DNA from: Vicugna vicugna
Taxonomy: Eukaryota
Assembly (NCBI GenBank): GCA_013265495.1
Contig: MU057809.1
Coordinates: 248,001-312,000 of the forward strand
Reading direction: 5' to 3'
DNA length: 64,000 nucleotides
The notes under the pieces are model-generated. The model was not told the DNA's origin. It saw nothing but the letters and a program-made list of their open reading frames with translations, and ran no database searches. The translations under genes and the position numbers were made by a program. Of the stretch, positions 12,901 to 57,243 are shown piece by piece (position 1 is the first letter of the stretch; the number at the start of each line of letters is the position of its first letter).

Positions 12901-13199
12901 CCGCAGCTACCCCTGACGTGGCTCCCCCAAAGCGAAAAAAAGCGCCCCATTTGGCACAAGACTGTCAGTGACGTTTTCGCCCCGCGACAGCCTAGCAGCC
13001 CCTGGTCTGAACTCCTCCTCAGGAGAGGAAGCTGCACGACCGGGCCCGTCGTAACCGGGCCCCGCTGCCGCTCGGCCCAGCAGGCACGGCGTCCAAGGCT
13101 CCAGGGCCCGCCAGAAGTACGAGCTTTGGGGGAAAAACAAAACAAAACGTGTTACTGCCCCAAGACAAGGAAGGAAGCAGCGAAACCCAAAAGCTTCAC

Positions 13200-33214: not shown

Positions 33215-34216
33215 ATGTGGAGCTGCGGCCCTCTCAACGGCACGGGCGGGGGTGAGGACCAGCTCCTGTGCCCGCACGTCCAGCGGGCCCTGTCCGCCCT
33301 GTCCCTGCTCCACCTGGTGGTCGGTGTCCCGGTGGGCCTGGGCTACAACGCGCTGCTGCTCGCGGTCAACCTGCAGGACCAGGGCAGCATGACCATGCCT
33401 GATGTCTACTTCGCCAACATGGCCGTGGCGGGCCTGGTCCTCAGCGCCCTGGCGCCCGTGCACCTGCTGGGCCCTGGTGCCTCCGGGTGGGCCCTGTGGG
33501 ACCTGGGCAGCGCGGTCCACATCACGCTGCTCGTGCTGTTCAATGTGTCCTCACTGGTGACCCTGTACTCCACTGCCCTGCTCAGCCTGGACTGCTACAT
33601 TGAGCGGGCCCTGCCGCGCACCTATATGTCCAGTGTCTACAACAGCAGGCACGTGTGTGGCTTCGTCTGGGGCGGGGCGCTGCTCACCAGCTTCTCCTCC
33701 CTGCTCTTCTACATCTGCGGCCACGTGGCAGCCAGGCTCGCGGAATGCGCCAGGATGCAGGACACCGAGGCCGCCGACGCCATCCTGGTGCTCACCGGGT
33801 ACCTGGTGCCCGGCCTGGCCGTGCTCTATGCACTCGTGCTCCTCTCACGAGTCCGGAAGGCGGACACGCCGCTTGACCAGGACGCGGGGTGGCTGGACCC
33901 CTCGGTGCACAGGCTCCTGGTGGCCACTGTGTGTGTGCAGTTTGGGCTCTGGACGCCTCACTACCTGACCCTCCTGGGGCACACGATCCTGGCTGCGCGG
34001 GGCAAGCCCCTGGATGGGCACCACCTGCGGATGCTGCGCTTTGCCAAGGACCTGTCACGGTCCCTGGCCTTCGCCAGCAGCTCAGTGGTGCCGCTGCTTT
34101 ACCGCTACATCAACAGAAACTTCCCCGGCAAGCTCCGGCGGCTGCTGAAGAAGGTGCACCGTGGGCAGCAGGGCTGCGCCCTGGACCAGGCGGGGCCGCA
34201 GCAGGCGATGGCGTAG
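33215..34216 (+). CDS. GPR146: G protein-coupled receptor 146 (333 aa, single coding exon)
   Basis: [10 protein letters not shown]...[23 protein letters not shown]...[39 protein letters not shown]...LLYRY matches human/mouse GPR146. Acceptor ctctgcgctctccccacag| ends at 33208, 6 nt before a GCC-ATG start. Confidence 0.98.
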
Positions 34217-43400: not shown

Positions 43401-46400
43401 CTCCCTTCTAGGTCAATTCGGGTTTTTCTGGGTCACGTGGCCAAACCAAGTTTGCTTAAAATGCAGCGTGTGGTTTGAATGACTTAAGAGCGAATTCCTG
43501 TTTTCCTTCCAGTAAGCACAGAGCCCGGAAGGCAGGGTGAGCCCAGGGGCGGGAAGACGGTGCTGGACGGTGCAGCCTCGGAGGAGCGGGAGCTGGGTAC
43601 CCCCGCAGGTGAGCCACCCCCCCCCTCCCCTCTGGTCGCCTGTCTGCTTTCCAAGCCAAGGCTCTCAGCGTTCAGAGTGAGCCGGCAGACTGGAGCCAGC
43701 TTCTCTGAAAACGAAAGTCTGTCTCTGCTCGAAGTGGGTCCCAGTGGCAAAGAAAACAATCTGAAGTGAGCAGACTTCTCATCCCTGTCCCTGAGGGCAG
43801 GCGAGCAGAGGCCGCAGCTCTGTGTCCTGTAGACGAGGGAGGGAGCTGTCAGAAAGCAGCCAGCGCTGACTGGGTGTTGGGTTTTCCTTCCACGCAGAGG
43901 ACTGGGCGTGAGCCCTGCACAGGGAGGCCCCTTCCCGGCGGCGGCGGGGCTGCTCCGTGTGCCGGGGACGGGCACTCAGAGTGAGGAGGGCGGGAGGGAG
44001 CTGACCCACGCCCCACGTGCCAGGCTCACCTTGTCATGAAGCTGCTGGGTGGTAAACAGCCCGTCCGGGCGCCTGCTGTCACAGACCGGGAAGTGAGGCC
44101 CTGGGCGTCCCCTCGCAGCCAGGCCTTCAGCAACTCGGGTCGGGCTGGGCCTGGGCGGCGGCTCACCCAGTCCGCATGGACCTTGATTTAAGGCCTGGGG
44201 CCTCCCGTCGGCTGCCCCGTCAGCTCGGGAGAGGCCCGAGTGGTGACCGCAGGGCGGAGGAGTTCCCAGCAGCAGAGCCAGACGGGACTCGAGGTGGTGC
44301 TGGGAGGGCCCTGCCGGGAGGCACTGACCACGGTGGCCAAGGCTGGGCCCCTCAGGCGAGACCACAACCTGAAGCCACACTCTAGGACGCCGCTGTCAGA
44401 CACGGTCCCCTGGCTGGCACAGGAGGGCAGCATGGCCTGCCCGCACCCCCATCAAGACAGTGTACACGTGCTGTTAAACGTGCAGGGTGCGGGGCGGGCG
44501 GGGGGTGTCAGTGGCACTACGGTAATTATGGCAAGGACGCATCCGTGTGGAAGCGGGGAAACGCGAAATGGAGCGAGTGGCCCCGCTGGACCTGGAGCTC
44601 GCTCACAACAATACAGGTCTGACCAGAGAGCACCGAGTGCAGGGGAGGGCGGCCACGAGACGGCGGGACGCGGCCAGGTCTGCACGCCGGGGCTGGGAGG
44701 GGCTGCAAGGACCACCCACACCCACTGTGGACCCCTGGGGCCACGGGGACCGGCCCTTCTAACTCCGGTGAGGCAGAACCCGCTTCCTAGAGCCACTCTG
44801 AAAACTATTTAAGGAGCTGCAGCAGCGAACACAATGTTCTCGAGGCTCTGGCCCTGGGAGTCCCCTGGGAGGCTGGACCTTGGCAGCCCTTTTGTGTAGT
44901 TGAGGAAGGGCCCCAGAAGCCCTGGTCCTTGGCCTGAAACTGGCACCAGAACAAGATGGAGGCCTGTCCTCCCAGGAAACCCTGAGCCTCAGGTAAGAAC
45001 CTCCGTTTCTGCTGGAGCAGCGCAGGCATCAGAGCTCCCGGCTGGAAGGCAGGACAGACGGCCGTGCGGGAAAATGCAAGCAGTTTCATGTGAAGTTAAA
45101 CACTTACCCTGAGAACTGGCAGACCTGCTCTGCGTGCTCACCCAAGAAAAGAAAGTGCTCAAGTGAAAACTACATTCAAATTCTAAAAAGCAGCTTTATT
45201 CATAGAGTCAAAACCCCAACGTTACTCAAACGGAGTGGCCGTCCACACAGCAAGTCCTGCTCAGAGGTGAGGGGCCAGCCCTCTGCCAGGGCAGCATCAC
45301 AGCGGGTGCCAAGAACAGGTGCCTCACACGCCCTGGACGTCCGCAGGGGTGGAAAGGGACCACCAGGACAGGCACCGGGGTTCTGGGGTGCCCTGCGTGC
45401 AGGGGGGCTTGTGGGGCTGGATGTCCAGGCCCACGGCCCCATGGTCTAGGAGCAGGTCTGGACACTGGCCTGGACATCGCTCCATGACTCTCACCTCAGC
45501 TGGAAAGTGGTTTCACACGTGTACCTGCTTCGTGTGGAAAACCAAGGTCTGAGCAAACCTTCACACAGAAGGTGCTCCGACCTGTGCACGTGGGGACACC
45601 CCACGCGTGGAGACAGTTTGTCCACCATGGCCCCAACTCCTGGGAGCCCGTCTGCTCTCTCCTCTGAGGACCCCCAAGTCCACGGTCTCCCACCGGACAG
45701 CTCACACCGTGGGGGAGGACGACCCCGTGAAGCTGGAGCCCCTTTCGCCCCAAGGCAGGCCTGGCCTGGAGAGAAGCACTCAACTCGGCGAGGAGCAGGC
45801 GAGGGCTTCCGGTCGGCAGAGTCCGGGACGCACTCCGGGCCCAGCTTGGACTCGCGCCCTCCCTCCGCCTGGCTGGGCGACATGGGACGCGGGGCCCGCC
45901 AGCACATCAGGTCACACCCACAACTGGGTGGCCCCTGATAAAGAATGCCCCAAATGCCACCAGCAAGGACAAGGGCGTTTGCTCCAGAAGGCCTGAAATG
46001 CTGGCCAGCCTGAGGCTGTTTCCTGCACCAGGGTCAGTGGTTCACAGCATCTTCTTTCCAATTTGCCTTCATCAAGGAAACACTCCAAGTCACTTCCTCT
46101 CGGTCTGGCCACCAGTCCTAGGTGTGACGTCACTCAGGGAGTCACTGACCCCTGAGCCCCGGCAGGTGGAAGACGTCATGACCCCCTGCGGCACACGGGC
46201 CCCGCCACCCCCACAGGCTGGCGGGACGAGAGCAGGGTGCGCACGGGCACGGCTCTCCAGGAAAGCAAGCAAGCAGCCATGTCGCGGCAGACACAGGTTA
46301 GTCAGTGTTCATGTGGCACACGAGCCTGCCACACACACGTGTGCTGAGACAGCCAGCCAGAGGAGCCACGGTGGACCCACGTCTGCACAGACCCCCGCCC

Positions 46401-47124
46401 ACTGCCCGTGGTCACCATGCAATGGAGCCGGCCTGGCGCAGAGTGAGGACGAGCCTTGGCACACCCGCCGTAGGCTGGGGGCCCGTCCCCAGCAGGGGGA
46501 GCCACGCCCGCCTTTCAGCGTTTCATTGGGTCCGTCCCCAGTTTTTCCTGCTCGCAATGGCTTTGAACAAACAGCGGTGTGGTCTGCCAGCCTCGCCTGC
46601 TGTTTGGCTGAAATCTAAGGAGGGGGCGACATGTACACAGAAACGAGGTCTTTCCCGTGGCAAGGCCAGGCCAGGAGGGCTGAGCCCTCGCTCCTGGACT
46701 CCAGCTCTGAGCAGAGTCCCCACCAGTGGGCCAGAGCTGGTGACACCTGCAGTGCGGGCACTAGCCGCTCCCCTGGAGGGCAGGGGCCTGGGTGTGGAAA
46801 GCAGGACAATGGGCTCAGAACGGAAGCCCTAGCCCTCCTGCCTGGACACCCCCCACGGAAGGAACCCTGTTTGGGAGACAGGGGCCCGGCACACATCTGC
46901 TCCAGGGGCGGGACGGGGAAAGCGGTTTGTCAGCAATGAGGGGAGGGGGTGCTCGAGGGGTGGGGTGAGGAGTCTCCCCAGGATCCACCCCGCAGGGAAG
47001 ATGGCTGTTAATACCACGCCCCATGCCCTCACCCTCCGCGGGAAAGGGGGCAAGACCCAGAAATGTCTTTAACGAGGTCCCAGACTGTCCCAAACCCAGG
47101 GGGCAGCCTGACGCTAGGCCCACG

Positions 47125-47146
47125 TCCCCCGCTGCTTCTGTTCCAG
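47125..47146 (+). promoter_or_regulatory. Splice acceptor of the orphan GPCR coding exon
   Basis: Pyrimidine tract 'tcccccgctgcttctgttccag|' ending at 47146, 16 nt before the ATG. An in-frame TAG at 47115-47117 closes the frame upstream in genomic DNA. Confidence 0.7.
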
Positions 47147-47162
47147 GTGGGACCCGGCCGAG

Positions 47163-48152
47163 ATGAGCACCCACAACATGTCCTGGATCCGGTACCCAAG
47201 CCGCGTCTCCACGGCTGTGGAAGAGGTCATAGCCGCGCAGAGCCTCGTGTCCAGGTGCGCGCTTGTCTACACGGCACTGTTCCTACCGCTGAGCCTGGCG
47301 GCCGGGCTCTTCAACTTGACCACCTTTGTCCGAGGCCGCGCCAGGCTGCAGGGCCTGGATGCCTGCCTGGCGGACCTCACTGCCACTGGTCTGCTGGTGA
47401 CACTGCTCTCGCTCACAGCGATTGGCCGGCCAGACTACCTGGCCACGACCCACCTGGGCTGTGCCGTTCTGTCCCTCGTGTTCAACATCTGCTACTTCAA
47501 CGCGCAGTACGTGCAGGTGGCCATGCTCTCCGCGTTCCTGCTGCAGTGCCCGTCCTGCCTGCGCGCGGCCCCCCAAGGGGCCCAGAGGCCCGCAGCCAGC
47601 CTGGCCGCCGTTGGGGGCTGTGCCATCTGCAGCTCCCTGGGAGTGGTGGCCCTCCTGGGCACGTCCGGGGAGCTTTACGAACCCACTCTGTGCCAGGTGG
47701 ACCCACTGACCGCCTGGCCCGAGTACGAGATCGTGAAGGTCAGCCTGGGCCTCGGGCTGGCCCTCGTCCTGAAGCTTGTGCTCCTCACCCTGCTTGGCAT
47801 CCAGCGGGCTGGCTGGGCGGCTCTGCCCCTGGGGGACGCGGGCTCAGCTCACTGCTGGGTGGTTCTGGCCATCACCCTGGCCTCATTCGCCTGCCGCCTC
47901 CTCTACAACACCGCGCTTGTCCAGCGGGCCCGGCTGAAGCTGCGGAGGGACATCGGTGCCCCCCGGGACGAGCTGCTCATGAACCTGGCGGAGCTGGCCC
48001 TGTTTGGGGAGAGCTGTGCAATTGCCCTGGCCACCCTCCTCCTCCACCGGCCATGCAGGCAGGCCCTGCTGAGCCTCCCGGAGCGGCTCACCCAAAGGTG
48101 CCGGAGGAGAGAGGCCAGCAACAACTTCTCCCTGAATAGAGTGGGGAGTTAA
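47163..48152 (+). CDS. Orphan, highly atypical class A 7TM receptor related to GPER1/GPR146 (329 aa)
   Basis: Seven hydrophobic segments (about aa 32-56, 65-87, 99-127, 144-166, 190-213, 232-253, 271-294). N-terminal sequon N5-M-S; Cys100 (3.25) and ECL2 Cys177. Near-gapless manual alignment to GPER1 from this window ([59 protein letters not shown]). From recall, mouse has the uncharacterised C130050O18Rik at this syntenic position; not verified. Confidence 0.88.
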   Translation: MSTHNMSWIRYPSRVSTAVEEVIAAQSLVSRCALVYTALFLPLSLAAGLFNLTTFVRGRARLQGLDACLADLTATGLLVTLLSLTAIGRPDYLATTHLGCAVLSLVFNICYFNAQYVQVAMLSAFLLQCPSCLRAAPQGAQRPAASLAAVGGCAICSSLGVVALLGTSGELYEPTLCQVDPLTAWPEYEIVKVSLGLGLALVLKLVLLTLLGIQRAGWAALPLGDAGSAHCWVVLAITLASFACRLLYNTALVQRARLKLRRDIGAPRDELLMNLAELALFGESCAIALATLLLHRPCRQALLSLPERLTQRCRRREASNNFSLNRVGS

Positions 48153-49409
48153 GTCGGAGCCCCTACCTCCCAACACAAGCCACACAGGCCAGTGAGGGCC
48201 TCTTCCTGGCTCTGCCAAGACTCAGAGCGACTTGCTCAGAGTCAGCAGGGATGACGGTCTGTCTAGGAGGCACTTAGAAATCAGCTTGATGGGCAACTCA
48301 GTTTCTGCAAAAGCGAGACAGCTCAGCCCAAACCAACACTCACACCTGATGGAATGAGTCTGGAGGGGGCAGGTGCTGGCAACACACCTGACCCAGGCGG
48401 GAGGTTCTACCTCGTCTGCAAGCCGGCACCTCTCCCCCGCGCCAGCGAAGGGCAAAGAGGGAACCCTGAAAATAGAGACGTTATTTAGGTAACTTGATGG
48501 CCACACTATACTCTGGCCCTGAATGGCCAGGCTGGTTAACTTCCAGCACCGCCAGCAAGTGGGGGCAGTGCAGACGTCTCCAAAGGCTTGTTTTGTCCTC
48601 AAATGTACCACCCCTGGAGGTCTGAGGTCTGGTCCCCGTGACCTGGTGGACAGGAGGTGGCCGTCCCGGGGTGATCAGTGAAAGTGGTTTCCAAAGTCTC
48701 AGCTGTTCTGTTTGATGTTATCTGCAGAAAGTGAAACATCAGGATGCAGAGCATGGTGATCAGTCTCATTCCATTGTTGTCGCTGGCTTTATGTTAAGAT
48801 TCTCTTGGTTGACTAGAGCACAGAGACATGCAAAGAATGGCATCTCTCTGGCTGCATAAGACCTACACCTTTAATAGTTAAAAAAAAAAAAAAAAGAAGC
48901 TAGGACCTTACTTCTTTAGAGCATTTTTCAGACGCAGCAAAATTAGGAAATTGCCTGTTTGCCTCCTGCCCCGAAACATGCACAGCCACCCTCTCAAGGG
49001 GGTGCGACAGCCCATGAGTACGTGGACACGTCACCGTCGCCCAAGGCCTCGGGTAGATCAGGGTCCACCCTGGGTGCCGCCCATCCTGTGGTTTGGACAG
49101 AGGTACAACGGCGTGCGTCCTTCACTGTCCAATCAAATGGGAGAGTTTCGCTGCCCTAAAACCCCCAGCCCTCCGCCTGCAGCTTGACCCTGACCCTCCC
49201 CGGCGCCCGCCGAGCCTCTCGCTGTCTCCACAGGTCTGCCGTCTCCAGGCCACGTACTAGAATCACAGAGCGGAGCCTGGTCAGGCGGGCTGAGGCCACA
49301 CACTAAGGTGCAGCTTGGAAGCTCGCTTCTCTCTAACGCTGAGCGATACTCCGTTGTTGCGATAGCTTCTATTGTAGTGAATATTTTAATGTTAATCTGC
49401 AACCCAAAG

Positions 49410-49415
49410 AATAAA
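49410..49415 (+). terminator. Candidate polyadenylation signal of the orphan GPCR (AATAAA)
   Basis: First clear AATAAA I saw after the stop, in an AT-rich patch followed by U/GU-rich sequence ('agcttttgagtgttct'). Implies a 3' UTR of about 1.27 kb. Confidence 0.5.
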
Positions 49416-51689
49416 AACACAGCTTTTGAGTGTTCTCAGTACTGAGTACTTCTCAGTACTGATGTATTCGCATTCCTTATTTGGAAGGAAAGTGATTTGG
49501 ACCTTAACAGTCAGGCGGCTTCTGTAATACGCCATTAAAACACTCAATGCTTTTTACAGAGAACCCCCTTCTACGACTTCTTCGTTTACTCGCACGTTCA
49601 TAAAACCTTCCTGTGGCCTCTGTGCAGCACGCCCAGAGGAGGGCCTGGCGTGTCCCCGCCCACCTGGGCCAAGCCCGGGGCCGCGTGGGAAGGCCGCTTC
49701 TTCACGGACCATCACTGACGGCTAGACGCAGGCCCTGAGTTTCTTGCTGAGAACTTTAAGGAGCACTGAAGTTGGCTCGGGTGCGTGGGTTTCGATGAGC
49801 AGGCCGGCGGCATTCTTTGCAGAGCTGTGTTTGAGCCTTGTCAGCCGGGGTCTGGGGTTGCTGTAACACTCAGGTCCTGTCCGGGGCCCACCTGTCATGG
49901 TGAGTTCCGTGAGGATGGGTGAGGGCAGTGCCCAGCCCACCGTGGGCTCCTCAGAGCCGCCCCCAGCTCAGCGGGGGGACACCTGTGCTCTGTAGGCACA
50001 GGACTGGCCTGAGGTTCCAGGGGCGGCCACCCAGACCGAGGTCTGGGAGCTCCTTGTCAGCGTGGCTGCCTCCCTCCAGGACTGCCCGCAGCCTCCCAGA
50101 AAGCCCTCTCGTGCCCGCCCCCACCCCGCCCCCTTGCAAGGGGAATGCCCCAGGAAGGCAGGTGGGTGGGTCTCACACCTCCTTTCAGCAGCGGGAGCCT
50201 CACTTCAAGCAAGCCCAGAGGGAAACAGGGCTGCTCTTAAGGCAACAATACTTCAACAAAAAACAATAAACAAAGAAAATGGGCTGCTCTGGCTGGAGGG
50301 GAGGGTGAAGAGACAGACCACAGAGAGGTAGAGGGGGCACCCAGACCCCACCCCCCGGCCCACGGGCCTGGTCCACTCCCCCAGGCGTCCGTGACCACGG
50401 GACCTCAGGGAGCCATGGGAACATGCAGGCTTCCTGGCAGCAGGAGGGCGTGCACTCCAGGAGGAAGCCTGCATGACCCCCGGGCCTAAAGACAGATCAG
50501 AACTGACCTGGTCGGGTGAAGCCACTTCCCAGGGCCCCTCACCTTTCCCCAAGGACACCGCTGGGGGCCACCAAGGTGGGGCTGGGACAAAGACTGCTGG
50601 CATTCTGGAACATTCCACCCATAAACCCCCAGTGCTGGGCAGCCCCCCCAGGCAGCCCCGTGTTCTGGTGGCCGCCGGCACATCCTGCTCGGAGGGTTTG
50701 AGGAACCCGGCAACAGCCAAGAGGGCCCAGCTGCCGAACGTCAACACCAGCGAAGCTGCAGGCGGGAGACCTGGGGCACCGAACCCGCCCAGGACCCACA
50801 GGCTGTGCCCACGCCTGCACACGCACAGGACCGGGACGGAGCCCACAGCACAGGCCCAGGTGGCGTCCAGACAAGCTCAGTGAGGGACACTCCAGGAGCC
50901 GCCCTCCCCCTACAGGGCTGCCAGGCCCCGCACGCAGACACCACCTGGCAAAAGGCCCCGATGGAGCACAGCCCTCGGCCAGGGCATGCGCGAGGGGCCA
51001 GAGCTCTGGCCCAGGACCGCCGGGGCACTTGGTCAGCCTCACACGGAAACAGCACCCTCCTCCAGGCACAGGACGGTGCACCCTGCTCCCCCGACTCTGG
51101 ACATTGGAGAGAAGGCACAGACACCGTGCGTGAGGGGTCACCGCTGCAGAAGCAGCTTCTCTGAGGGCGCCGGCCCTGCCCCTGCCATGCAGCTGCGCGG
51201 GCTCCTGGCTCCCACAGCTGGAGCCTCACAAGTAAACCAAATCTCGCCAATGCTCCTCGCACACTGGACTGACACGAGTGCCCAGGGAAGACAGAGAAGC
51301 AGCTCCTGGGACCGACTCTGCTCACAGCTGATGGGCAGCACGGGACTGAGGAAGATCTGACAGCTGTGCTTCACTCTACTCACATCACCCGCGTCATGAT
51401 GAACACAGGGGCGCAGGAAGGGGGGATGAGGCCCAGGGCCACATGGCGTCAGTTCTGAGCGTCCCCACTGCACTGTGACCCACGGGGGGATTCCCACTCC
51501 TGGAGGGGAGGGCACAACACAGGCCCGGAGCCTCAGCTGTACTCGCGGAGGGGCTGGGCTGCGTTTGCAAATTTAAACACGTGGAGGCTGATCATCTAGG
51601 GTTCCCTGTGAGGAACCCAGGCACCGCGCTCCATGGAGGTGCCTACTCGGGATGGTTGGGCCGACGTGGCAAGTGCTGGTGTGGAGATG

Positions 51690-56178: not shown

Positions 56179-57243
56179 ATGGAGACGCAGCTGGGCGCCT
56201 ACAACGGCAGCCCCGCGGGCCTCGACCTGCCCCGCGCGCTGGCCAACGGCTCGGGCGTGCTCTGGGAGCAGCAGCAGTATGCCATCGGGCTCTTCCTCTC
56301 CTGCCTCTACACGGTCTTCCTCTTCCCCATCGGCTTCGTGGGGAACATCCTGATCCTGGTGGTCAACATCCGCTTCCGGGAGCGGATGACCGTCCCCGAC
56401 CTGTATTTCATCAACCTGGCGGCGGCCGACCTCATCCTGGTGGCGGACTCGCTCATCGAAGTGTTCAACCTGGACGAGCAGTACTACGACCTCACCGTGC
56501 TCTGCACCTTCATGTCGCTCTTCCTGCAGATCAACATGTACAGCAGCGTCTTCTTCCTCACCTGGATGAGCTTCGACCGCTACCTGGCCCTGGCCAAGGC
56601 CATGCGCTGCAGCCTGTTCCGCACCAAGCCCCGCGCGCGGCTGAGCTGCGGCCTCATCTGGATGGCCTCCGTGTCTGCCACGCTGGTGCCCTTCACCGCC
56701 GTGCAGCTGCAGCACACAGAGGAGGCCTGCTTCTGCTTTGCGGACGTCAGGGAGGTCCAGTGGCTGGAGGTCACGCTGGGCTTTGTCGTCCCCTTCGCCG
56801 TCATCGGGCTGTGCTACTCACTCATCGCGCGGGTGCTGGTCTCGGCGCAGGGGCACCGGGACCTGCGTCCTCGCAGGCAGAAGGCCCTCCGCATGATCTT
56901 CGCCGTGGTCCTGGTCTTCTTTATCTGCTGGCTGCCTGAGAACGTCTTCATCAGCGTCCACCTGCTGCAGCGCCCGCAGCCGGGGGCCGCCCCCTGCCAG
57001 CAGTCCTTCCGCCACGCCTACCCGCTGACTGGCCACATCGTCAACCTGGCGGCCTTCTCCAACAGCTGCCTGAACCCCCTCATCTATGGCTTTCTCGGGG
57101 AGACCTTCAGGGACAAACTGAGGCTGTACGTCGAGCAGAAAACCAGCGTGTCGGCGCTGAGCCGCGTCTGTCACGCTGCCCTGAAGGCGGTTGTCCCGGA
57201 CAGCACCGAGCAGTCAGAGGTCAAGTTCAGCAGCACCGTCTAG
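56179..57243 (+). CDS. GPER1: G protein-coupled estrogen receptor 1 (354 aa from the first in-frame ATG)
   Basis: [31 protein letters not shown]...[25 protein letters not shown]...SFDRY...[16 protein letters not shown]...NSCLNPLIY...FSSTV is GPER1. The ORF track starts at GTG 56158; the first ATG is at 56179 (GCCGGCATGG, good Kozak). Confidence 0.98.

Follow-up and report, generated by a model that had tools for sequence, protein, structure and literature searches.

A camelid orthologue of mouse C130050O18Rik between GPR146 and GPER1, a predicted seven-helix protein with replaced class A activation motifs

Coding exon, orthologues and losses

The DNA analyzed here, referred to as the window, is a 64-kb stretch of the Vicugna vicugna genome (contig MU057809.1, positions 248,001 to 312,000) in which a sequence-only reading had noticed a third receptor-like gene between GPR146 and GPER1. 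The ATG-to-TAA open reading frame (ORF) of 329 codons on which that reading was based was recovered intact, both in the ORF listing and in the raw sequence (Table 1). It is a genuine protein-coding gene lying between these two neighbors, with its entire ORF in one exon behind an apparently spliced 5' untranslated region (UTR) and in antisense orientation in an intron of C7orf50. Furthermore, it is the camelid orthologue of mouse C130050O18Rik and rat LOC102546864, and this identity, taken jointly with the descent set out below, is regarded as very nearly certain. An overlapping ORF of 358 amino acids in another frame (47063..48139, plus strand) was deemed to be a by-product of GC-richness; the database homologues all match the frame beginning at 47163.

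A search of a 5.8-billion-protein collection returned 63 orthologue clusters, ranging from platypus to eutherians. The best match was Camelus ferus LOC102511494 (95% identity), a distance that points to a camelid outside Camelus as the source of the window. Further hits were in horse, rhinoceros, seals, dog, bats, moles, shrews, many rodents, lagomorphs, afrotherians, marsupials, and platypus (53%). Searching 1.84 billion representatives with a profile, and then looking up clusters, added anole, horned lizard, newt, frog, sturgeon, bichir, bowfin, gar, arapaima, mormyrid, percomorph teleosts, and one shark, and the family is thus at least as old as the jawed-vertebrate ancestor. Its members are held by two unnamed chordate protein clusters (55 and 272 members). 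The rodent proteins were 59-65% identical to the window protein over 98-100% of its length, and two of them are named 'RIKEN cDNA C130050O18 gene'. The orthology to mouse C130050O18Rik that had been suggested in the sequence-only reading is borne out by this name and by the synteny, which holds in Mus caroli. The mouse and rat genes resemble the camelid gene over the full length of the protein (~62% identity), in their position in C7orf50, in the single coding exon, and in the acceptor region. The camelid protein differs from the rodent orthologue in having Gly for Ser at position 2.50, IALAT for N-x-x-x-[TI] in transmembrane helix (TM) 7, and one extra residue before TM6.

The coding DNA of seven orthologues was open throughout and collinear with the coding sequence (CDS) of the window. 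The ratio of nonsynonymous to synonymous substitution rates (dN/dS), estimated by the Nei-Gojobori method with bootstrap intervals, was 0.29-0.36 for unsaturated eutherian pairs, with 95% confidence intervals (CI) within 0.21-0.48. The GPER1 control gave 0.09 between the window and Camelus and 0.25 between the window and horse. The C130050O18Rik orthologue evolves fast, yet under purifying selection. That the gene is real, with a dN/dS not near 1, is supported by the 63 orthologues and by eutherian bootstrap intervals that all fall below 0.5.

All seven species compared (camel, horse, mouse, platypus, monito del monte, anole, and shark) have the gene inside the WKF-domain gene C7orf50, in antisense orientation. 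In camel and horse, the downstream distance to GPER1 is 8-9 kb, and a 7tm_1 gene that begins approximately 9.5 kb downstream in anole was taken to be GPER1. On the other side, an alligator gar gene model (P0113, 792 amino acids) fuses GPR146 (residues 1-330) to a C130050O18Rik-family protein (residues 413-792), which shows that the two genes are adjacent and co-oriented in a holostean fish.

At the 5' end of the coding exon, an AG at 47145-47146 follows the tract ctgcttctgttcc. With the acceptor-like sequence ctgcttctgttccAG running to 47146, the first nucleotide of the exon would be 47147, 16 nt 5' of the ATG. The motif tgcttctgttNcag just 5' of the ATG is conserved in horse, seal, and mouse, and the annotated elephant-seal gene model splices at the homologous AG. 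The acceptor that had been read 16 nt upstream is therefore present in the sequence, with its homologue in use in the seal model, and the downstream AATAAA was likewise found on the plus strand at both 49410 and 50265.

Transcription was assessed from RNA contigs of a relative ~95% identical to the window, with reads placed at 88% likeness; the contigs are unstranded. Small RNA-type runs of this relative (70-420 Mb) gave contigs at depth 15-33 across the gene, and such depth in runs of this size excludes genomic DNA as their source. In runs X5 and X6, one contig ends at 47173 and the next begins at 47144, an overlap of 30 nt (k-1), and the depth doubles rightward of the break from ~16 to ~33. 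This break at the acceptor would be produced by spliced and unspliced forms diverging there, provided that the upstream exon has CAG at its end as well. The downstream contig extends for 3132 nt from 47144, and its projected end at position 13113 of the Camelus sequence L001 lies directly at an AATAAA (13114) that corresponds to window position 50265. Runs X15 and X19 (92% of sampled words) were rejected as expression evidence, being DNA-like, with flat depth and contigs of 29-67 kb.

Two further regions upstream of the acceptor were covered by RNA contigs of the relative. A separate low-depth contig of 623 nt at window 44501-45113 overlaps a block conserved in zebu (44767-45005, 75% identity) and could be an upstream exon of the C130050O18Rik orthologue, another transcript, or an enhancer RNA. 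The contigs covering 45190-47173 have about half the depth of the exon, with their left end on a minus-strand AATAAA (45195-45200), and this coverage may come from transcription of the opposite strand, from intron retention, or from a long alternative 5' exon.

Published expression data concern the rodent genes. Rat LOC102546864 and mouse C130050O18Rik, whose orthologues are reported to occur in most vertebrates but not in primates, have been described as a 'GPCR-like membrane protein' expressed in microglia and most tissue macrophages, and the transcript was lost together with microglia in Csf1r-knockout rats, that is, it was CSF1R-dependent (PMC7941205). In a microarray study, C130050O18Rik was down-regulated in Brucella-infected RAW264.7 macrophages. 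In the searchable literature, four papers name one or other of the two symbols, and the gene is not the subject of any of them. Automatic pipelines label members of the family inconsistently, as a GPER1 isoform, GPR146, CXCR1-like, C3a receptor, or OPSD. The gene is already known from LOC and hypothetical entries and has been flagged once in the literature, so it is not wholly overlooked. Of the suggestion of an overlooked receptor lost in humans, the loss in primates stood, whereas the claim that it was overlooked held only in part, PMC7941205 having flagged the gene.

None of the 63 hits was a primate, ruminant, pig, or cetacean protein, while GPER1 and GPR146 of these groups are abundant in the same database. 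In sperm whale, a remnant of the C130050O18Rik orthologue lies 7.4-8.2 kb upstream of GPER1 (L010:1812-2598). A stop interrupts its frame near the N-terminus, its homologous pieces are spread over three reading frames, and internal parts are deleted, whereas the adjacent GPER1 is intact. This copy is a pseudogene. In zebu (L008:3577-6204), anchors corresponding to window 44767-45005 and 52244 bracket 2.6 kb, compared to 7.2 kb in the window, and no trace of the orthologue was found between these conserved anchors; here the gene is deleted. In baboon (L009), a remnant was sought in a 10-kb flank that probably ends just short of the expected position. The absence from human that had been proposed, extended to primates, is supported by the lack of any primate protein among the hits and by PMC7941205, which agrees, and primate loss would be read from these two sources. 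Among the cetartiodactyls examined or represented in the protein search, camelids are the only ones keeping the gene.

Given the losses in other cetartiodactyls, the camelid copy could itself be a decaying relic, with an ORF open by chance on the way to a whale-like pseudogene. The dN/dS between the window and Camelus was 0.51 (CI 0.23-1.07; 13 synonymous and 18 nonsynonymous changes), and the camelid Gly2.50, IALAT in place of NSLAT, and the one-residue insertion before TM6 would also fit such decay. However, both camelid lineages have an intact ORF, and no CDS indel separates the window from Camelus, whereas the surrounding 5.3-kb alignment contains 17 gap openings (~3 per kb). Furthermore, the window protein departs from the consensus at only 3 of the 121 columns conserved at 85% or more in mammals (F105L, F197L, and L253V); these are conservative changes and a mid-range count among mammals, and a close relative transcribes the region. 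The relic explanation was therefore considered very improbable.

Table 1. Features of the C130050O18Rik orthologue and its neighbors in the window
Feature	Coordinates	Strand	Basis or remark
C130050O18Rik-orthologue CDS	47163..48152	+	One exon, 329 codons + TAA; ORF listing, orthologues, dN/dS, model
Polypyrimidine tract + AG acceptor of coding exon	47132..47146	+	Sequence; conserved motif; seal model; RNA contig break
Probable 3' UTR, ~2.1 kb	48153..50290	+	Strand inferred; ends at poly(A) signal AATAAA 50265-50270
Second AATAAA	49410-49415	+	Within probable 3' UTR
Sequon N5-M6-S7, in conserved HNMSWxxYPS motif	47175..47183	+	NM[ST] in 31/31 mammalian orthologues
Cys100 (3.25), TM3 half of disulfide between TM3 and extracellular loop (ECL) 2	47460..47462	+	Aligns with GPER1 TM3 Cys
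Cys177 (ECL2), opens most conserved block CQVDPLTAWPEYEIVK	47691..47693	+	Invariant; top sliding-window conservation
Gly76 at 2.50 (Asp in typical class A receptors)	47388..47390	+	Alignment A2
C244-R245-L246-L247 replacing CWxP, Arg at toggle 6.48	47892..47903	+	Alignment to GPER1 FICWLP
Glu283 at 7.45, candidate counter-charge for Arg6.48	48009..48011	+	Glu in 20/20 amniote sequences
GPR146, upstream neighbor	33215..34216	+	99% identity to Camelus bactrianus GPR146 cluster
GPER1, downstream neighbor, closest characterized relative	56179..57243	+	86% identity to bovine GPER1

AATAAA was counted 23 times in the 64-kb window, mostly on the plus strand, compared to 2.7 expected from dinucleotide-preserving shuffles. 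The GPER1 proteins of camelid, bovine, hippo, and sperm whale have 354 amino acids, the N-terminus being ~21 residues shorter than in the 375-residue primate and rodent form.

Relationship to GPER1, GPR146 and class A receptors

The 7tm_1 domain for which a HMMER check had been suggested was not detected, since hmmscan against Pfam-A gave no family at E <= 10, and the precomputed Pfam field was '-' in all full-length orthologues. Single-sequence phmmer against PDB chains also gave no match. The nearly gap-free alignment to both neighbors that the sequence-only reading had reported was not significant by pairwise BLASTP, in which GPER1 aligned in register across TM1-TM6 (E 0.4) and GPR146 out of register (E 0.05). 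The relationship to the neighbors thus becomes significant only with family profiles, pairwise comparison being insufficient.

With the mammalian profile A1, GPER1 was the first match among 177,635 PDB sequences (E 2.7e-8). With the vertebrate-wide profile A2, it scored 56.6 bits (E 1.9e-14), followed by GALR1 (galanin receptor 1; 38.5 bits, E 6e-9) and CXCR2 (36.6 bits, E 2e-8), a lead of 18 bits over the next family, and the matches spanned the full length of the seven helices (7TM). Profile-profile comparison by hhalign gave a strong match between the family and GPER1 (probability 98.2%, E 5e-14, 297 columns) and a weak one between the family and GPR146 (probability 40%, E 3e-4), while GPER1 and GPR146 matched each other with a probability of 99.5% (E 1e-22). 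The GPR146 profile also placed GPER1 first in the PDB, with 97 versus 57 bits (a 40-bit lead). In addition, a hidden Markov model built from mammals only recovered the GPER1 CDS (E ~1e-10 to 1e-12) when cattle, baboon, and whale DNA was translated in all six frames.

GPR146, the C130050O18Rik orthologue, and GPER1 were therefore concluded to be an old tandem cluster predating the split of cartilaginous and bony vertebrates. The earlier proposal of an old tandem paralogue agrees with this, as GPER1 is the best match both for the family (56.6 versus 38.5 bits) and for GPR146, and the synteny extends from shark to mammals.

The AlphaFold2 model (pLDDT 72.9, pTM 0.69) has seven TM helices and helix 8, as had been proposed from the hydrophobic segments. 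Foldseek returned 167 PDB hits at E <= 1e-3, and the best 50 of the 167 were all class A receptors. The top hit was GPR30/GPER1 (TM-score 0.60/0.72), followed by CCR5, apelin, B1 bradykinin, and other chemokine-type receptors. On the evidence of the model and of Foldseek, the protein is assigned a class A 7TM fold with helix 8. The term G protein-coupled receptor (GPCR) holds for fold and descent only, the activation motifs being missing.

GPER1 (GPR30) is thus the best match by both profile and structure. It lies on the same strand and in the same host intron, and it shares the class A fold, the TM3-ECL2 disulfide, and local motifs in TM1, intracellular loop (ICL) 1, TM5, TM6, and TM7. All of the GPER1 matches listed in the sequence-only reading (Y-T...P in TM1, R.R.R in ICL1, V[ST]LG, F.C.L..N, and LA.F..SC) were present in the alignments. 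The two proteins are nevertheless only ~20% identical, and GPER1 keeps N1.50, D2.50, DRY, W4.50, P5.50, CWLP, and NPLIY, of which the mammalian C130050O18Rik family has none. GPER1 also evolves far more slowly, with ~70% identity from camelid to fish compared to ~27% for the family. GPR146 belongs to the same tandem cluster and is also without a canonical DRY, and the TM3 pattern F-N-[IV]-x6-Y that it was said to share with the new gene was seen in the profile alignment. It differs in being detected by Pfam 7tm_1 and in keeping W6.48, P6.50, and P7.50/Y7.53-like residues. Gly at 2.50, which had also been listed as common to the two, does not reflect shared descent, as only the four camelid-type sequences in the alignment have it.

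Motif states and the conserved surface

The motif states were read from alignment A2 (30 vertebrate sequences, including 11 non-mammals) and from a mammalian alignment of 31 sequences. The class A hallmarks kept are the N-terminal sequon, the pair formed by C3.25 and the ECL2 cysteine, a basic ICL1, C6.47, and F-x-x-S-C in TM7. The N5-M-S sequon and the C100/C177 pair of the sequence-only reading were both upheld, NM[ST] being present in all 31 aligned mammalian orthologues and the cysteines invariant in the 30 vertebrate sequences. Of the activation-motif residues, C6.47 is the only one kept family-wide. N1.50 is replaced by G (G48 in the window), W4.50 by G, L, or F (G151), Y5.58 by L or F, and DRY by A-F-L. 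D2.50 is replaced by G in camelids (G76) and by N, S, H, or C in other mammals, most of which have Asn, and is D or E in 8 of the 11 non-mammals. P5.50 is replaced by A, T, or S in mammals (A200), with Pro in every non-mammal. CWxP has become C-R-L-[LF] (C-R-L-L in the window), and NPxxY has become I-A-L-A-T in the window and N-S-L-A-[TI] in most mammals.

The Arg at 6.48 was found in 29 of the 30 aligned vertebrate sequences, and its presence varied together with that of an acid at either 2.50 or 7.45. All 20 amniote sequences combine a non-acidic 2.50 with Arg6.48 and Glu7.45, and newt, frog, sturgeon, bichir, bowfin, gar, arapaima, and mormyrid combine Asp or Glu at 2.50 with Arg6.48 and Gly, Ala, or Gln at 7.45. 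Exactly one acid stands beside Arg6.48 in 28 of the 29 Arg-bearing sequences, and no sequence has an acid at both positions. In three percomorph teleosts that lack either acid (Gln at 2.50 and Gly at 7.45), the Arg is also lost, with His or Leu instead. In solved class A structures, positions 2.50, 7.45, and 6.48 line the sodium/water pocket, and a buried ion pair of Arg6.48 and the acid, replacing the sodium site, is therefore plausible from the alignment.

The distribution of conservation over the protein was also compared to that of GPER1. For this purpose the extracellular half was taken as the N-terminus, ECLs, and outer helix halves, with region boundaries from the AlphaFold2 model. Conservation in the mammalian C130050O18Rik family was 0.70 in the extracellular half and 0.53 in the intracellular half (permutation p < 1e-4), and the vertebrate-wide values were 0.51 and 0.35, respectively. 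Vertebrate GPER1 under the same treatment showed the opposite pattern, with 0.70 in the extracellular half and 0.77 in the intracellular half. Mean column identity in the family was 0.65 for extracellular loops and 0.45 for intracellular loops. The best-conserved blocks were CQVDPLTAWPEYEIVK (ECL2 and the top of TM5), G-x-P-R-D-E-L-L-M-N-L-A-E-L (ECL3 and the top of TM7), N-x-C-Y-F-N-A-Q-Y (upper TM3), and NMSWxxYPS (N-terminus). The most variable parts were ICL2, ICL3, and the C-terminal tail, of which ICL2 and ICL3 were also poorly modelled. Since the extracellular half is the more conserved, the reverse of GPER1, this pattern speaks for outer-face binding as the conserved function rather than engagement of a conserved intracellular transducer.

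These data bear on the possibility that the protein is a conventional G-protein-coupled orphan receptor, activating through non-standard residues, with the missing motifs reflecting fast divergence and not a changed mechanism. The class A fold with helix 8, the nearness to GPER1 and chemokine-type receptors, the conserved extracellular pocket regions, which fit ligand binding, and the fairly conserved ICL1 (R.R.R) and start of helix 8 (PCR..L) are all in accord with this, as is the retention of D/E2.50 and P5.50 in non-mammals. However, five canonical microswitch positions are all replaced together, with Arg for Trp6.48 in 29 of 30 sequences, the usual G-protein contacts in ICL2 and ICL3 are the least conserved parts and vary in length, and the conservation pattern is the reverse of that in GPER1. 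A conventional orphan receptor was accordingly rated as rather unlikely.

The protein could alternatively be a 7TM accessory protein and not a receptor. It might, for instance, assist or regulate GPER1 or GPR146, or reside in an intracellular membrane, and its conserved 'extracellular' face would then contact a luminal protein. This would fit the retention of the three-gene arrangement for >400 million years, the loss of the activation motifs, and the compactness of the conserved surface, which lies on one face. Against this, the gene has been lost where GPER1 and GPR146 persist (the whale pseudogene, the zebu deletion, and the lack of a primate protein), making an obligate partnership unlikely, and the invariant N-terminal sequon and TM3-ECL2 disulfide fit the topology of an ordinary secretory-pathway receptor. 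An accessory role was consequently held to be quite improbable.

Proposed mechanism and significance

The best explanation overall, favored with some confidence, is that of a conserved GPER1-related gene acting as an atypical, G-protein-independent receptor or binding protein; the non-canonical mechanism as such is put forward more tentatively, as the likeliest of those considered. On this reading, macrophage-lineage cells would carry the C130050O18Rik orthologue as an atypical receptor or binding protein that does without the canonical G-protein activation machinery. Arg6.48 is probably buried and paired with an acid in the former sodium pocket, provided by Asp/Glu2.50 in most fishes and amphibians and by Glu7.45 in amniotes, and this pairing would keep the core fixed in a single state. 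The constrained extracellular surface (N-terminus, top of TM3, ECL2/TM5, and ECL3/TM7) points to a conserved ligand or partner, and the output might be through scavenging, a co-receptor function, or another non-canonical route. The searchable literature holds no report of ligand-dependent G-protein or arrestin coupling for the family.

Further parallels would be the atypical chemokine receptors (ACKR1-4) and other 'silent' class A receptors. Chemokine-type receptors are the next-best neighbors of the family in both fold and sequence, and the common features of an altered or absent DRY and a myeloid context suggest ligand binding without G-protein signaling. The ACKRs, however, keep most of the other microswitches (CWxP, NPxxY, and D2.50), unlike the C130050O18Rik family, for which no chemokine binding is known and whose C-terminal tail is short and poorly conserved.

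In its most specific form, this proposal describes an ancient macrophage-lineage 7TM protein in which an Arg6.48-carboxylate pair would replace both the sodium pocket and the tryptophan toggle. The acid would have moved from 2.50 to 7.45 at the origin of amniotes, Arg and acid would have been lost together in percomorphs, and the permanently 'locked' scaffold, with only its extracellular face working as a scavenger or co-receptor, would have been discarded repeatedly in primates, whales, and ruminants. Taken as a whole this is somewhat unlikely.

Several points weigh against parts of the best explanation. Loss of the motifs is no proof of lost G-protein coupling, and GPR146, which is also motif-poor, is still reported as a signaling receptor. 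The Arg-acid pairing would be drawn from two or three evolutionary events and from general class A geometry, and the shark alone has Arg6.48 with no acid at 2.50 or 7.45. Either GPER1 or GPR146 may be the true sister. The dN/dS between the window and Camelus, with an interval reaching 1.07, may reflect some relaxation in the camelid lineage. The evidence for transcription comes from unstranded RNA contigs of a relative. An explicit splice joint was not recovered from these RNA contigs, and two other runs gave one unspliced contig across the acceptor (45232-48869).

What is new here is the descent from the GPER1/GPR146 cluster, with statistics, and the jawed-vertebrate age, with fixed microsynteny. 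To these are added the wholesale replacement of motifs with a co-varying Arg6.48 and acid, the inverted conservation pattern pointing to the extracellular face, and the documentation of pseudogenization in whale and of deletion in cattle (zebu). Mouse, rat, dog, horse, and camelids carry a conserved receptor-like gene that humans lack and that has no name, Pfam assignment, or known ligand. The rodent orthologue marks microglia and tissue macrophages, and model animals could, through this gene, differ from humans in macrophage biology in a hidden way. The gene could also confound work on the neighboring Gper1 and Gpr146 loci. As a natural class A scaffold with every activation microswitch replaced that has nonetheless remained under purifying selection for >400 million years, the family offers a useful test of what a 7TM bundle can do without these switches.

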